Sequence record: KX397373.1
DNA length: 64,000 nt
Direction: 5' to 3' (one strand)
Shown: piece after piece, positions 869-4,647 of the stretch
Numbering within the stretch: position 1 is the first letter of the stretch
Layout of the letters: each line of letters begins with the position of its first letter
Position numbers and translations under genes: made by a program
Notes under the pieces: generated by a model
Seen by the model: only the letters and a program-made list of their open reading frames with translations
Told to the model about the DNA's origin: nothing
Databases searched by the model: none

Positions 869-944
869 AGGGGTATAGTTCAATTGGTAGAGCACCGGTC
901 TCCAAAACCGGGTGTTGGGGGTTCGAGTCCCTCTGCCCCTGCCA
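869..944 (+). tRNA. trnW: tRNA-Trp(CCA)
   Basis: 76-nt cloverleaf; acceptor AGGGGTA/TGCCCCT, anticodon arm CCGGT-CTCCAAA-ACCGG, TTCGAG T-loop, encoded CCA. Confidence 0.95.
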
Positions 945-1002
945 AAAACGAGTTCATGATACCTTAAGTGCCAATCCGGCTGGATATGCTTAGGAGACTA
1001 CC

Positions 1003-1227
1003 ATGAATTTATATTTGCTAAAAAGAACTGATAAGTATGGCCATGAGGAGTTTATTTCCATTGTCGTTTCCGCAGAAACGGAACAGGCGGCAAGAGAAAC
1101 TAAACCATCAACGGGCTATTGGTGCGATGGTGGGCACGGCGAAGAGAAAGTTACCTTGAGCTGCACCCATATCGGTATCACGGAGTTACCTCCAGGGGTA
1201 ATCCATGAATCTTATCAGAACCCCTAG
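1003..1227 (+). CDS. small hypothetical protein (tandem paralog 1)
   Basis: AGGAGA RBS; clear similarity to 1326..1568. Confidence 0.75.
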   Translation: MNLYLLKRTDKYGHEEFISIVVSAETEQAARETKPSTGYWCDGGHGEEKVTLSCTHIGITELPPGVIHESYQNP

Positions 1228-1325
1228 TGCAGTTAAAAGACTAGGTAACTAAATTTAGCCAGCAAGTTCAGTTCTGTCCAAAAGCCATATTTGCCCACCA
1301 CGGGAGTCGCTTATTGGAGAACACC

Positions 1326-1568
1326 ATGAATTTGTATTTGCTAGAACGAACCGATTCAGTCGGTTACGATGAGTTTGATTCCATAGTCGTTGCGACTCCT
1401 ACGGAGGATGCAGCGCGCGCAACTTTCGGAAAGGGTTGGGGATGGACTTGCTTCTGTGATGAGGACGATGCGTGTGACTGCGGAGACGGGGTAACCCTGA
1501 GCGTTAAACACATCGGCACTACTCATCTCGAGGAAGGTCTTATCCACTCTTCGTTCTGTGCAGGCTGA
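1326..1568 (+). CDS. small hypothetical protein (tandem paralog 2, Cys-rich insert)
   Basis: GGAGA RBS and ATG at 1326; shares MNLYLL.RTD..G..EF.SIVV and VTLS..HIG.T with the previous ORF. Confidence 0.75.
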   Translation: MNLYLLERTDSVGYDEFDSIVVATPTEDAARATFGKGWGWTCFCDEDDACDCGDGVTLSVKHIGTTHLEEGLIHSSFCAG

Positions 1569-1597
1569 ATACGGTGGGCTTCGGCCCACCACACTTT

Positions 1598-1673
1598 GGG
1601 GCAATGGCTCGAGCGGTTAGGCGACGAATTGCAAATTCGGATCAGGTCGGTTCAAGTCCGGCTTGCCCCTCCA
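1598..1673 (+). tRNA. trnC: tRNA-Cys(GCA)
   Basis: Acceptor GGGGCAA/TTGCCCC, U73, anticodon loop TTGCAAA, encoded CCA. Confidence 0.9.
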
Positions 1674-1708
1674 ATTTTTTTCTGAATTCCTGTAGGAACT
1701 CAAATCGG

Positions 1709-1876
1709 ATGAAAGCCAAACTTCGTAATTTTGCGTTGCTGGTTTTCCTGGTGTTGGCCGTATTGTTCTACCTGGCTAAGAATTTTGTGATGCTCGCCGT
1801 TGACGTCGCAATAATTCTGATGGTCTTGTGGGTGCTACGGTCACTCGCTAAACGGGCTTTCCGTCGGAAGGCTTAG
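1709..1876 (+). CDS. small (55 aa) two-helix membrane protein
   Basis: ATG at 1709; two hydrophobic stretches flanked by basic residues. Confidence 0.55.
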   Translation: MKAKLRNFALLVFLVLAVLFYLAKNFVMLAVDVAIILMVLWVLRSLAKRAFRRKA

Positions 1877-1939
1877 CGAACAGCGGAAACTCCGCTCTGT
1901 TGTATCAAACCCTGATATTCACCAGTAGGATAATAAAAC

Positions 1940-2770
1940 ATGAAAAAGCTTTTGGTAGGTTTGTTGGCAGTCCTGGCATTCTCCGCTCACGCTGCTGATG
2001 TTACCATTACGACGGGCCAGCAAGGTCTGACGTACAACGCCACGTACGGCGTGAATCTTGCCAGTGCTCTGAATGAGTTCGGCAACAAGTCCACTGTGGT
2101 ACCGTCGAAAGGTTCCCTGGACAACCTGGACAAAGTTGCTGCCGGTTCTGCGCAGATTGGTTTTACCCAGGCAGACGCTTTCCAGTTCTGGCGCTCACAG
2201 CATCCGAACGAAGCACAGAACGTAGACATCGTTGGCCAGCTGGGTGACGAGTGTGTCTTCGTGGCTGTCAAGAAAGAAGGTAAGGTTGGCGGTGAAGCCG
2301 ATCTGAAAGAAGGCATTAAGATTGCGGTCGGTGAACCCGACTCTGGTTCTTACGCCAGTTGGCAATACCTGCAAGGTTTGGTGAAGCAATACGCAAAAGC
2401 TGAAACCTACGCGAAAGGCGGTATCCGTTCTCTGTCCAAAGTGGCCACGGGTGAATACGACGCGTTCATGTGGGTAAGCGCACCGGGCAAGAATAACAAA
2501 TTCCTCGAAGCAGTTAACCAGGATAGCTCTGGTCTGAAACTCATCGACATGAACAACTGGAACGTCAACGATAAACTGCCTAACGGGCAAGCAGTCTACG
2601 AGAAGAAGTCTGCTAAAGTTGATAACTCTGCGTGGTTCGGTGGTGATGTGAAAGTGCCGTGCACCAAAACGTTGGTGGTTGCTAATACCGACGCCGGTGA
2701 CGAACTGCTGGAAGCCGTTTCTACTATCCTCCTCAAGAATGCTCCACGCATCATGGGGACGGGTAAGTAA
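1940..2770 (+). CDS. TAXI-family TRAP solute-binding protein with signal peptide
   Basis: Signal peptide MKKLLVGLLAVLAFSAHA; TITTG..G.TY, SKGSLDNL and IGFTQAD motifs; strong codon bias. Confidence 0.85.
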   Translation: MKKLLVGLLAVLAFSAHAADVTITTGQQGLTYNATYGVNLASALNEFGNKSTVVPSKGSLDNLDKVAAGSAQIGFTQADAFQFWRSQHPNEAQNVDIVGQLGDECVFVAVKKEGKVGGEADLKEGIKIAVGEPDSGSYASWQYLQGLVKQYAKAETYAKGGIRSLSKVATGEYDAFMWVSAPGKNNKFLEAVNQDSSGLKLIDMNNWNVNDKLPNGQAVYEKKSAKVDNSAWFGGDVKVPCTKTLVVANTDAGDELLEAVSTILLKNAPRIMGTGK

Positions 2771-3357
2771 GTGCTGACGTGTAAAGGGCACTGGCTGGGC
2801 TGATAACCCCGCCGGGACGGTTTCATCTGAGGGGTTGGGTGAAGTGAAGAAACGTGGCACACCAATAAGTCCACGTTAACCGGATTGCATAAAGCACTAC
2901 CTGCGGGTAGGCAATCCTGCCGTCTAACATTATTCGGTGATTAAACATGGAAGAGTTGTTCAGAGCGTTTCTGTACCGAATGGGTACCTGGTTGAAAGAC
3001 CTCAAGCTCTGGAAGCTCGATTGCTATTGGTTATCAGGATGTGGGACTGAACGCCATAAACCTGTTTTAGGACGAGAGTCCTCAACCCAGGCGAAGTCCG
3101 TTACGGACGAAGGTCAAGCACCGGCCCATTAAGCCGACTCGCTGACATAGGCAACCTTCACCCCACAATCTGAATGTAACTGATGGGATTGAGTTCCCAG
3201 TGTGAAAGAGTAGCAGTGTGCTACTGAGTTCCTCCCTGGGACTGCTGAGCAGCGAGGGAATAGGGCCAAGAAGAAAGTAAGTAGGGTTGGTGCTTGGAGG
3301 CGCTAAGACCGGGGGATACCCTGGCTCAGAAGAAGAAGTCCATCAACCTCACTTAAT
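2771..3357 (+). ncRNA. candidate large structured ncRNA (~590 nt)
   Basis: No credible ORF. Hairpins include 2851-57/2871-77, 2882-88/2911-17, 3069-73/3078-82 with a GAGA loop and 3209-15/3219-25; two crossing 8-bp long-range helices. Strand inferred from the adjacent tRNAs. Confidence 0.6.
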
Positions 3358-3433
3358 GCGAGTATAGCTCAGCTGGTAGAGCTTCTGGTTCCCAACCAGA
3401 CGGTCGTGAGTTCGAATCTCATTGCTCGCTCCA
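3358..3433 (+). tRNA. trnG: tRNA-Gly(CCC)
   Basis: Anticodon arm TCTGG-TTCCCAA-CCAGA, U73, CCA. Confidence 0.92.
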
Positions 3434-3542
3434 ACAAAATCAATGACTTATAGCGATTTCCCCATTTCGCTACAAGACAACCTAAGTATATGTAAAACAA
3501 CCAAGACGTGTGCGAATTCGAAGTTGAGTTCTCAGACGTATT

Positions 3543-3628
3543 GGCGCGGTACTCAAGTGGTCAACGAGAGCAGACTGTAAATCTGTTGCCTTCGGGCTTC
3601 GTAGGTTCAAATCCTTCCCTCGCCACCA
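3543..3628 (+). tRNA. trnY: tRNA-Tyr(GTA)
   Basis: Long variable arm, loop CTGTAAA, CCA; single mismatches in the acceptor and T stems. Confidence 0.88.
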
Positions 3629-3634
3629 ATATTT

Positions 3635-3709
3635 GTTCCTGTCGTCTAGTGGTAAGGACACCTGGTTTTCAACCAGGCAACCGGAGTTCAATTCTCCGCA
3701 GGAACGCCA
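3635..3709 (+). tRNA. trnE: tRNA-Glu(TTC)
   Basis: Anticodon arm CCTGG-TTTTCAA-CCAGG, G73, CCA. Confidence 0.92.
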
Positions 3710-3714
3710 AACAA

Positions 3715-3861
3715 TGACACTGACCCTCGCCGCCATTGAGCAGCTTAGAGGTCTGGCAGCCAATAAAGGCATCCGTAAGTAACCGTAGCCTTCGGGCGTA
3801 GATGGTGAAAGCCGCCAAGTGCAGCCTTAGAACTCCGTGGGATTCGGAGGAGTGTCACCCA
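3715..3861 (+). ncRNA. 147-nt tRNA-like RNA with acceptor stem, T-like arm and CCA
   Basis: TGACACT (3715-21) pairs with AGTGTCA (3851-57) followed by C-CCA; stem CTCCG/CGGAG with a 7-nt loop just upstream; no D or anticodon arm. Confidence 0.55.
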
Positions 3862-3865
3862 TTTT

Positions 3866-3943
3866 AGGATTGTAGCTCAGTTGGTCTAGAGTGCCGCCCT
3901 GTCACGGCGGAGGTCGCGGGTTCGAGCCCCGTCAGTCCTGCCA
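3866..3943 (+). tRNA. trnD: tRNA-Asp(GTC)
   Basis: Anticodon arm CCGCC-CTGTCAC-GGCGG, G73, CCA. Confidence 0.95.
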
Positions 3944-3952
3944 TTTTTAAAT

Positions 3953-4028
3953 TGCGTCTTAGCTCAGTTGGTAGAGCGCACCCCTGATAAGGGTGAGGTC
4001 ACTGGTTCAAGTCCAGTAGATGCAACCA
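3953..4028 (+). tRNA. trnI: tRNA-Ile(GAT)
   Basis: Anticodon arm CACCC-CTGATAA-GGGTG, CCA. Confidence 0.95.
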
Positions 4029-4034
4029 GTATTC

Positions 4035-4110
4035 GGTTCTGTAGCTTAGCTGGTAGAGCACGCCACTCATAATGGCGCGGTCGTTGGTTCGAATCCAGCC
4101 AGAACCACCA
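4035..4110 (+). tRNA. tRNA with CAT anticodon (elongator Met or Ile2)
   Basis: Anticodon arm CGCCA-CTCATAA-TGGCG, CCA; Met versus lysidine-Ile cannot be resolved by eye. Confidence 0.9.
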
Positions 4111-4117
4111 TTTCAAC

Positions 4118-4195
4118 GGTGTATGTAGTTCAGCTGGTTAGAATACTGGCTTGTGACGTCAGTGGTCGAGAGTTCGAGTCTCTCCATACACCCCA
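4118..4195 (+). tRNA. trnH: tRNA-His(GTG)
   Basis: Encoded G-1:C73 pair, loop TTGTGAC, CCA. Confidence 0.93.
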
Positions 4196-4200
4196 ATTCT

Positions 4201-4290
4201 GGAGAATTGTCCGAGAGGCTTAAAGAGCTCCCCTGCTAAGGGAGTGGTGGCGGAAGCTGCCCGTGTGTTCGAATCACACATTCTCCGCCA
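4201..4290 (+). tRNA. trnS: tRNA-Ser(GCT)
   Basis: 90 nt with long variable arm; anticodon arm CTCCC-CTGCTAA-GGGAG; G73, CCA. Confidence 0.93.
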
Positions 4291-4296
4291 AACAAT

Positions 4297-4416
4297 AGTC
4301 GCCTAGCTCAAGATTAGAGCACACCTTACGACCAATACTGACCAACACGCACCGCGGTGCAATAATGGCGGTGGCGTGATGTGCGGTTACCGGTTCAAGT
4401 CCGGTGGTGACTTCCC
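4297..4416 (+). ncRNA. tRNA-like RNA with a 52-nt segment in place of the anticodon loop
   Basis: Intact acceptor AGTCGCC/GGTGACT, D stem GCTC/GAGC and T arm ACCGG-TTCAAGT-CCGGT; ends TCCC, not CCA. Confidence 0.65.
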
Positions 4417-4422
4417 TATAAT

Positions 4423-4487
4423 GGCTACTCCCGGTCGGTCTGGGGTCGTCTGTAAAGACGAGGATGGTTCAAATCCGTCAGTGGCAA
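4423..4487 (+). ncRNA. minimal or degenerate tRNA-like element (GTA in a 6-nt loop)
   Basis: GCTACT/AGTGGC stem, TCGTC-TGTAAA-GACGA arm, 1-nt variable region, GATGG-TTCAAAT-CCGTC T arm; no CCA. Confidence 0.45.
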
Positions 4488-4488
4488 G

Positions 4489-4561
4489 AGCGATGCTGTT
4501 AAGATGGTTAACACCCGACTCATAATCGGATATTCGCAGGTTCGATTCCTGTCATCGTTCG
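4489..4561 (+). tRNA. atypical tRNA(CAT) without encoded CCA
   Basis: AGCGATG/CATCGTT acceptor, GTTA/TAAC D stem, loop CTCATAA, canonical T arm; C at position 8 and 3' end CGCCC. Confidence 0.6.
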
Positions 4562-4570
4562 CCCTATTTT

Positions 4571-4647
4571 GGTTCCATAGCTCAGTTGGTTAGAGCGGCT
4601 GCCTGTTAAGCAGTAGGTCCCTGGTTCGAGTCCAGGTGGTACCGCCA
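4571..4647 (+). tRNA. trnN: tRNA-Asn(GTT)
   Basis: Loop CTGTTAA, G73, CCA; one U:U mismatch in the acceptor stem. Confidence 0.92.

Follow-up and report, generated by a model that had tools for sequence, protein, structure and literature searches.

The 64 kb of DNA analysed here (hereafter the window) are, at 100% identity, the first part of the 244-kb genome of Erwinia phage vB_EamM_Stratton (KX397373.1, genus Erskinevirus), a phage with split multisubunit RNA polymerase genes, as in phiKZ-like jumbo phages. ARAGORN called 12 tRNAs in the window and no tmRNA, and the run of tRNA genes is broken by a single long gap, which extends from the end of a tRNA-Glu at 3709 to the start of a tRNA-Asp at 3866. 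This gap holds a 147-nt element (3715–3861, plus strand, referred to hereafter as the Stratton element) that lies on the same strand as the tRNAs of the cluster and ends 4 nt ahead of the tRNA-Asp. The GenBank record carries no annotation on it. ARAGORN called no tRNA at 3715–3861, and Rfam 15 returned nothing there at gathering thresholds and nothing at E values up to 10, the tRNA and tRNA-Sec models included; a first reading made from the letters of the window (the sequence-only reading) had forecast that both tools would miss the element in this way.

That reading had described an RNA with only the top half of a tRNA. Direct reading of the sequence bore out a perfect 7-bp acceptor-like stem formed by the two ends of the element, followed by a C in the discriminator position and an encoded CCA. 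The adjacent arm likewise has the 5 bp and 7-nt loop described (CUCCG/UGGGAUU/CGGAG), but it is not flush with the acceptor-like stem as the equivalent arm of a tRNA would be, one unpaired G intervening. A strict version of this top-half motif (5-bp hairpin with a 7-nt loop, 0–1 nt, a perfect 7-bp Watson–Crick stem, then NCCA) occurs four times in the window, in three true tRNAs and in the Stratton element, and its chance rate is 0.04 per 64 kb over both strands (100 first-order Markov simulations). The single-sequence folding energy of the element is ordinary (z = −0.94), and support for the fold therefore comes from sequence comparison rather than from energy.

With BLAST against phage records, copies of the element turned up inside tRNA clusters, in gaps that carry no annotation, in five jumbo-phage genera: Erskinevirus (phiEaH2, Asesino), Wellingtonvirus (Kwan, Wellington, pEa_SNUABM_11), Machinavirus (Machina, Huxley, Parshik, several pEa_SNUABM phages and Salmonella phage pSal-SNUABM-04), Seoulvirus (SPAsTU, pEa_SNUABM_29) and Moabitevirus (Moabite, 2050HW, Pectobacterium phage vB_ParM-25 and others). 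Altogether there are 19 distinct relatives, all of them in tRNA clusters of jumbo phages or of uncultivated viral contigs, and the phage hosts of the family are Erwinia, Salmonella, Serratia and Pectobacterium. A covariance model (R1) built from 16 distinct sequences of 120–222 nt recovered a diverged second copy in Moabitevirus (Moabite and 2050HW, 34 and 29 bits) and a further member on an uncultivated viral contig (L277, 48 bits), which directly follows a tRNA-Asn-CCA and the bases AACAA. Pattern scans of IMG/VR and JGI metagenomes had added a few variants to these 16 sequences, the metagenome scan giving nothing beyond near-identical copies of known phages. Matches to a 14-base pattern on viral and genome contigs were, among those listed, mostly due to chance; longer patterns gained one true member (L277) and one doubtful one, and no family match was found in 5,426 E. 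coli genomes. The doubtful match (L149, 1530–1701, minus strand, on IMGVR_UViG_3300022407_004562) lies 170 nt downstream of a tRNA-Ala and combines a UGACUCA/UGAGUCA stem, a GCCGG-UGCAAUU-CCGGC arm and a CCCA tail; it is without a covariance-model score, and possibly represents a distant member of the family or a chance match.

Nearly all related phages have a tRNA-Tyr upstream of the element, if not always adjacent to it. Public records at the family loci are either blank or covered by spurious small coding sequences. In Moabite, the two 'hypothetical protein' genes CPT_Moabite_078 and CPT_Moabite_080 (L009, 602–724 on the plus strand and 1176–1379 on the minus strand) overlap both family copies (619–745 and 1222–1349), and are probably spurious gene calls. 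We found no description of this RNA in the literature, and neither a 2021 comparative study of jumbo phages nor a 2026 review mentions such an RNA. The Stratton element is a member of a previously undescribed and unannotated family of phage RNAs.

Comparison of the relatives supports a common fold for the family, a four-way cloverleaf without an anticodon arm (Table 1). As in a tRNA, an acceptor stem, a 4-bp D-like stem, a third arm, a short junction and a 5-bp T stem follow one another in the same order; in contrast to a tRNA, there is no 7-nt anticodon loop, no GG in the D-like loop and no UUCRA in the T-like loop. The sequence-only reading had seen unrelated structure in place of the D and anticodon arms. 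No anticodon arm is present, but the remainder is not unrelated to tRNA: the topology of the cloverleaf is retained, with a D-like helix whose loop has a conserved C…GA, a third arm and a 6–7-nt junction.

Table 1. Predicted features of the Stratton element, with positions in the window.
Feature	Position	Strand	Remarks
ACAA leader	3711–3714	+	directly 5′ of the element; conserved
P1 5′ strand, UGACACU (acceptor-like)	3715–3721	+	pairs with 3851–3857
P2, D-arm analogue	3722–3753	+	outer 4-bp helix 3722–3725/3750–3753
P2 interior	C 3726, GA 3748–3749	+	conserved; around variable apical hairpin 3729–3744
P3, variable third arm replacing anticodon arm	3755–3826	+	
P3 outer helix, GGCAGC/GCAGCC	3755–3760/3821–3826	+	A·A mismatch; then internal loop; register less certain
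P3 inner helix, GGC/GCC	3768–3770/3814–3816	+	3 bp
P3 distal part	3771–3813	+	hairpins GCC-UUCG-GGC 3788–3797 and GGU-GAAA-GCC 3804–3813
J3/4, variable-loop analogue, UUAGAA	3827–3832	+	6–7 nt family-wide; NNA(G/U)AA beside T-like arm
P4, T-like arm	stem 3833–3837/3845–3849; loop 3838–3844	+	loop UGGGAUU
Spacer nucleotide, G	3850	+	between P4 and P1 3′ strand; unpaired in Stratton
P1 3′ strand, AGUGUCA	3851–3857	+	
3′ tail, C discriminator and CCA	3858–3861	+	

The sequence-only reading had proposed a covariation check in homologs, and the terminal stem does show compensatory changes. In P1 these fall at 3:70, 4:69, 5:68 and 7:66, as in the exchange of UGACACU/AGUGUCA for UGGUACC/GGUACCA; position 1:72 is weak (U–A in 13 members, other combinations in 5). 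All four pairs of the P2 outer helix covary, with nine helix sequences and 63 of 64 cells canonical (92.9% in the 18-sequence alignment); in phage 2050HW, P2 has shrunk to a 5-bp hairpin with a CAAGA loop. The P4 stem is mostly CUCCG/CGGAG, and its diverged versions (CUCAG/CUGAG, CCAGG/CCUGG and CCACG/CGUGG) are all complementary. The spacer between P4 and P1 faces nucleotide 8 and pairs with it in 13 of 18 members (U·G in 7, C–G, G–C and U–A in 2 each; G·G in Stratton). This eighth acceptor pair creates an 8+5 acceptor/T stack in those members, a point of likeness between most of the family and bacterial tRNA-Sec; in tRNAs generally, an acceptor stem and T arm that adjoin in this way are stacked.

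The third arm is a variable expansion. Its outer helix is conserved, and lengthened to 7–8 bp in Machinavirus, and the inner helix shows repeated switches between GGC/GCC and AGC/GCU. This outer helix is less securely placed in register than P1, P2 and P4, UGGC/GCCA being an alternative. A UGGC/GCYA closing helix was in fact favoured at first; we replaced it by GGC-A-GC/GC-A-GCC followed by an inner RGC/GCY helix, since the inner helix covaries from G–C to A–U and the outer one is extended in Machinavirus. Further out, the GCC-UUCG-GGC hairpin picked out by the sequence-only reading is real and is kept in relatives, with a UGCG loop in one, a G·U pair in another and, in others, a different hairpin in the same position. 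The CGCCAT/ATGGTG helix that it had also proposed (3731–3736 with 3802–3807) is not conserved, and the pairing was discarded: in Kwan-type members ATGGTG is retained although the first arm is unrelated, and in Asesino-type members CGCC(T)T is retained although the third arm is unrelated.

Arms also appear in new combinations. The Stratton third arm is shared with Kwan and its first arm is not, and an uncultivated relative (L024, 4014–4158, minus strand, compared with the Stratton element and with L002, 2917–3062) carries a first arm of the Stratton type joined to the third arm of Asesino; such arm-swapping mosaics suggest recombination between the arms of family members.

Two resemblances in the periphery were considered and rejected. 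Patches reminiscent of anticodon loops occur in the third arm (CGUA, CGUU and AGUC, and in Seoulvirus a GUAAAUC like the loop of tRNA-Tyr), and were judged to be chance, since they do not lie in 7-nt loops and U33 is missing. What we take to be a likeness to SRP/4.5S RNA (GCAGCCAA..GGCA together with a 3′ ACCC) has no Rfam support.

To quantify the covariation, 24 pairs were scored in a model-fitted alignment of 18 sequences, with two controls, in which the 3′ partners were slid out of register or the columns were shuffled (500 shuffles). Pairing is found in 95.2% of cells, a figure inflated by the fitting of the alignment to the proposed structure and hence to be read against the 35–46% obtained with 3′ partners slid. 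Double changes are seen in 15 of the 24 pairs (2–4 with partners slid), although with many sequences closely related the independent events are fewer than such cell counts imply; the covariation score is 0.389 (0.05–0.08 with partners slid), and none of the 500 shuffles matched the observed pairing, double changes or score. RNAalifold, which like these controls mitigates the inflation, recovered P1, P2 and P4 unaided from the 18-sequence alignment and added the eighth acceptor pair. Four helices show compensatory changes across five genera. The sequence-only reading is borne out as to the tRNA-like top half, which belongs to a conserved and structured RNA gene, and we regard it as highly probable that the element is a real gene of this kind for a tRNA-mimic RNA.

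The terminal loop of P4 reads UG-N-R-A-UU in 19 of 19 members (UGGGAUU, UGAGAUU, UGAAAUU, UGCAAUU, UGGAAUU or UGCGAUU), with U1, G2 and A5 invariant, position 3 free, position 4 always a purine, and UU in the place of the two bulged nucleotides (NY) of the T-loop motif. The sequence-only reading had noted that the Stratton loop is not the TTCRANY of tRNAs, which is true of every member; the loop is no degenerate tRNA loop and fits the UGNRA-UU class of T-loops. In FMN and cobalamin riboswitches, terminal loops that bear a T-loop belong to this class, with the consensus (YGNRA)NY and most conservatively (UGHAA)UU, and in these a receptor adenine inserts between positions 4 and 5 (10.1101/2022.12.26.521914). 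The settings differ, in that the riboswitch loops dock in ligand-sensing mRNA leaders whereas the P4 loop caps an arm beside an acceptor-like stem, and Rfam gave no riboswitch match for the element.

From the loop consensus we infer that P4 would fold as a true T-loop and dock elsewhere in the RNA. Candidate receptors are the AA of J3/4 and the conserved GA of P2, the latter being the natural choice if the D-loop/T-loop elbow of tRNAs is taken as a model. None of the published T-loop receptor patterns (UNANA+2, URA/RA) accommodates every member, and inspection by eye of the members compared showed nothing that covaries with loop positions 3 and 4. With respect to the paired arrangement of an AG..A and a UG..A T-loop, the family has UG..A alone, with no conserved AG..A pentamer by eye in P2 or J3/4.

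The closest analogue among known RNAs is RNAC of phage T4 (species 1 RNA, gene rnaC). It is of similar length (139 nt, compared with 147 nt in Stratton), lies in or at the end of a tRNA cluster on the tRNA strand, as the Stratton element does, and its termini form an acceptor-like stem beside a T-like hairpin, with no recognised anticodon arm, as in the family. The two differ in detail: T4 RNAC has a canonical UUCGAAU T-loop, an imperfect acceptor stem with two U·U mismatches and no encoded CCA, whereas the family is marked by its UGNRA-UU loop, C-CC tail and ACAA leader. No Rfam family exists for T4 RNAC, and the T4 tRNA region (L025) gave no match to covariance model R1 and shows no sequence homology to the family. 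The biological role of T4 RNAC is unknown, and RNAC and RNAD are regarded as by-products of that region to which no role has been assigned (PMC3014915, PMC9697503).

With no anticodon, the element cannot decode. It is nevertheless retained in phages with just one or two tRNAs and duplicated in Moabitevirus, which points to a function of its own, and the acceptor/T half and the junction are constrained where the third arm is not: the acceptor-stem sequence (UGAC-N-C … G-N-GUCA-CC) is conserved beyond the needs of pairing and, with the C-C tail, is nearly invariant, whereas the distal part of the third arm ranges from about 20 to 120 nt. We propose that the RNA acts through the acceptor/T half. 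Our preferred reading, to which we give a probability of about 0.55, is that the element encodes a small, stable, non-coding tRNA mimic that would be excised by RNase P and engage a factor that reads the acceptor stem and T arm of tRNAs. The RNA would be co-transcribed with the tRNAs of the cluster; host RNase P would cut after the ACAA leader, between A3714 and U3715, and the 3′ end would be trimmed to the C-CC(A) tail just ahead of the next tRNA. RNase P contacts C74 and C75 of its substrates, which the invariant CC of the family would fit. A purine of the conserved P2 GA may insert into the T-loop to form a tRNA-like elbow, and the top half would act in trans on a protein that recognises acceptor ends, whether as decoy, competitor or scaffold. 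Candidate partners are a host tRNA-directed defence enzyme and a processing enzyme of phage or host; the ORFs neighbouring the element have no informative Pfam match. The decoy or scaffold mechanism in particular, which was among the suggestions of the sequence-only reading, is our best guess as to mechanism, and we advance it as a tentative proposal with odds clearly below even.

The leader also bears on a reading in which the element would act only in cis, as a module that serves the processing or stability of the polycistronic transcript of the tRNAs by providing an extra entry site for RNase P or RNase E, or a protective fold. All 16 family members have ACAA directly before their first base, as do L277 and both copies of the second paralog, and within the cluster this leader is limited to the element and to an odd tRNA-like RNA at 4297, the ordinary tRNAs having other spacers. 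The constant location within tRNA clusters and the overall shape of an RNase P substrate agree with a role in cis, as does the precedent of T4 RNAC and RNAD, likewise by-products of a tRNA region. Against it, the ordinary tRNAs of a cluster already give RNase P a site at intervals of ~80 nt, and the acceptor sequence, the T-loop class, the C…GA of P2 and GGCAGCC are conserved beyond what a mere fold would require. The pEa_SNUABM_29 copy, moreover, follows a protein gene, with the nearest downstream tRNA ~500 nt off, and Moabitevirus keeps two diverged copies; we therefore think a purely cis-acting module unlikely.

We judge in much the same way a role within a phage ribonucleoprotein, as its RNA subunit or scaffold, in the style of Y RNA–Ro particles or packaging RNAs, in which the tRNA-like end would serve biogenesis only. 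Y RNA-like RNAs, YrlA among them, carry a tRNA-like module and are sometimes phage-borne, and the Stratton element shares with YrlA the general character of a non-coding RNA with such a module. The Ro-binding stem of YrlA is built from its 5′ and 3′ ends, while its tRNA-like part lies in the interior and has canonical D and T loops; the Stratton element differs in that its own ends form the acceptor stem. Rfam, whose curated families include Y RNA and YrlA models, gave no match. The symmetric helix GGC-A-GCC/GGC-A-GCC and the junction residues are conserved, and variable expansion arms are typical of the RNAs of ribonucleoproteins. Some jumbo phages, in addition, encode Ro/TROVE proteins with tRNA-like partners (PMC7824862). 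The GGCAGCC motifs are, however, missing from the second paralog and from L277, and the annotation of 1–56 kb shows no TROVE or other RNA-binding gene near the element, all of which leaves a ribonucleoprotein scaffold improbable.

A lower probability still attaches to the suggestion of the sequence-only reading that the RNA could be chargeable, that is, completed with CCA, aminoacylated and used outside decoding in a tmRNA-like role or as a transferase substrate. The Stratton element taken singly encodes an intact acceptor helix, discriminator and CCA, C73 and C74 are invariant across the family, and minihelices are known substrates of some synthetases. The family as a whole weakens the case: a complete CCA is not a family feature, being present in 11 of 18 members (CCCU, CCUA or CCAA in the rest) compared with 40 of 42 neighbouring ARAGORN-called tRNAs at the same loci, so that it is not under the constraint seen in real tRNAs. 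The G3:U70 determinant of alanine tRNAs is absent, as the sequence-only reading had stated (3:70 is A–U in 14 of 18 members and G–C in 4 of 18), position −1 is A in every member and never G, and the 8+5 or bulged helix is unlike EF-Tu substrates. The variation in CCA, the A at −1 and the lack of known identity elements in the acceptor stem together disfavour aminoacylation as the conserved function, and an amino-acid carrier is unlikely.

A tmRNA-like role meets further objections. The element and tmRNA have in common an acceptor stem and T arm, the replacement of the anticodon arm and, for the element as predicted, 5′ maturation of the RNase P type; tmRNA, however, has a tRNA-type T-loop, a tag frame and a pseudoknot ring, whereas the element has neither tag frame nor ring, its CCA is not conserved, and it has no anticodon arm, no conserved ORF and no ARAGORN tmRNA call. 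Of the resemblance to tmRNA and Y RNA proposed from the sequence, a generic likeness is what survives, the defining features of both being absent; the element is not a tRNA, a tmRNA or a Y RNA. The accompanying remark that there is no tag ORF needs one amendment, since in Stratton an ATG at 3714 opens a 22-codon frame, while no ORF is conserved in the family.

That frame, and the odd tRNA-like remnants in the tRNA clusters of these phages, are what could be said for a locus without any function as RNA, either a tRNA gene decayed by insertions or a gene for a small peptide, a reading that retains a negligible probability: compensatory changes in four helices and five genera essentially refute the pseudogene, and a peptide gene was rejected as the start is ACG in three members, the peptides run from 8 to 59 aa and the frame in which the conserved GGCAGCCAAUAAA block would be translated differs among members.

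We return to the preferred reading, a tRNA mimic acting in trans, to consider one specific form of it. The prevailing view of phage tRNA clusters is that they counter host defences that cleave tRNAs. An abundant, non-decoding mimic could be a dedicated anti-defence RNA that sequesters or inhibits a host enzyme directed against the acceptor ends or top halves of tRNAs; the target would be, for example, a nuclease, a nucleotidyltransferase or a toxin of the pyrophosphokinase type, and recognition would run through UGAC…GUCA-C-CC and the T-loop elbow. This is a speculative extension that we consider doubtful, less probable than a decoy or scaffold in general. If true, it would mean that the pool of real tRNAs is protected by the first RNA decoy of such a kind, and it would offer a possible function for the long-unexplained class of T4 RNAC.

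After the sequencing of T4 RNAC and RNAD in the 1970s, the non-tRNA RNAs of phage tRNA clusters have, to our knowledge, gone ignored. The family described here provides a second and better-constrained example of a tRNA-like stable RNA in such clusters, and its strong covariation, compact core, non-tRNA T-loop, free periphery and retention in phages with few tRNAs make it a tractable model for the function of tRNA mimics. As no Rfam model exists for it, a curated one would recover these genes.

The Stratton cluster contains further unusual RNAs downstream of the element. At 4297–4416 (plus strand) lies a second non-canonical tRNA-like RNA, the odd RNA referred to above, which GenBank annotates as a 120-nt 'tRNA-Ile(aat)', with the same annotation in Asesino, and which neither ARAGORN nor Rfam calls. 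Its minimum free energy fold (z = −3.0) has a 7-bp acceptor stem and canonical D and T arms (T-loop UUCAAGU), a long extra hairpin and no anticodon arm; it ends in UCCC and is preceded by an AAACAA leader like that of the Stratton element. Between this RNA and a tRNA-Met is a mini cloverleaf of ~62 nt (4424–4485, plus strand, z = −3.7), in which a terminal stem of 6 bp encloses three short hairpins and the T-like loop is UUCAAAU; it is called as a tRNA by none of the tools and has a weak tRNA-Sec-like Rfam score (16 bits) within a longer match at 4386–4485.

Among the tRNAs proper, that tRNA-Met (4488–4563, plus strand) is the only one of the 12 whose called 3′ end is not CCA (it is GCC), and at 44 bits with the Rfam tRNA model it outscores just one other tRNA of the window. 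The tRNA immediately downstream of the Stratton element (STRATTON_12, 3866–3943, plus strand) is likely mis-annotated in GenBank, where it is entered as tRNA-His(gtg); its anticodon loop is CUGUCAC, and ARAGORN calls it tRNA-Asp(gtc). The cluster (869–4647) holds all four tRNAs with GUN anticodons (Tyr, Asp, His and Asn), a set that carries queuosine and is targeted by some anticodon nucleases.
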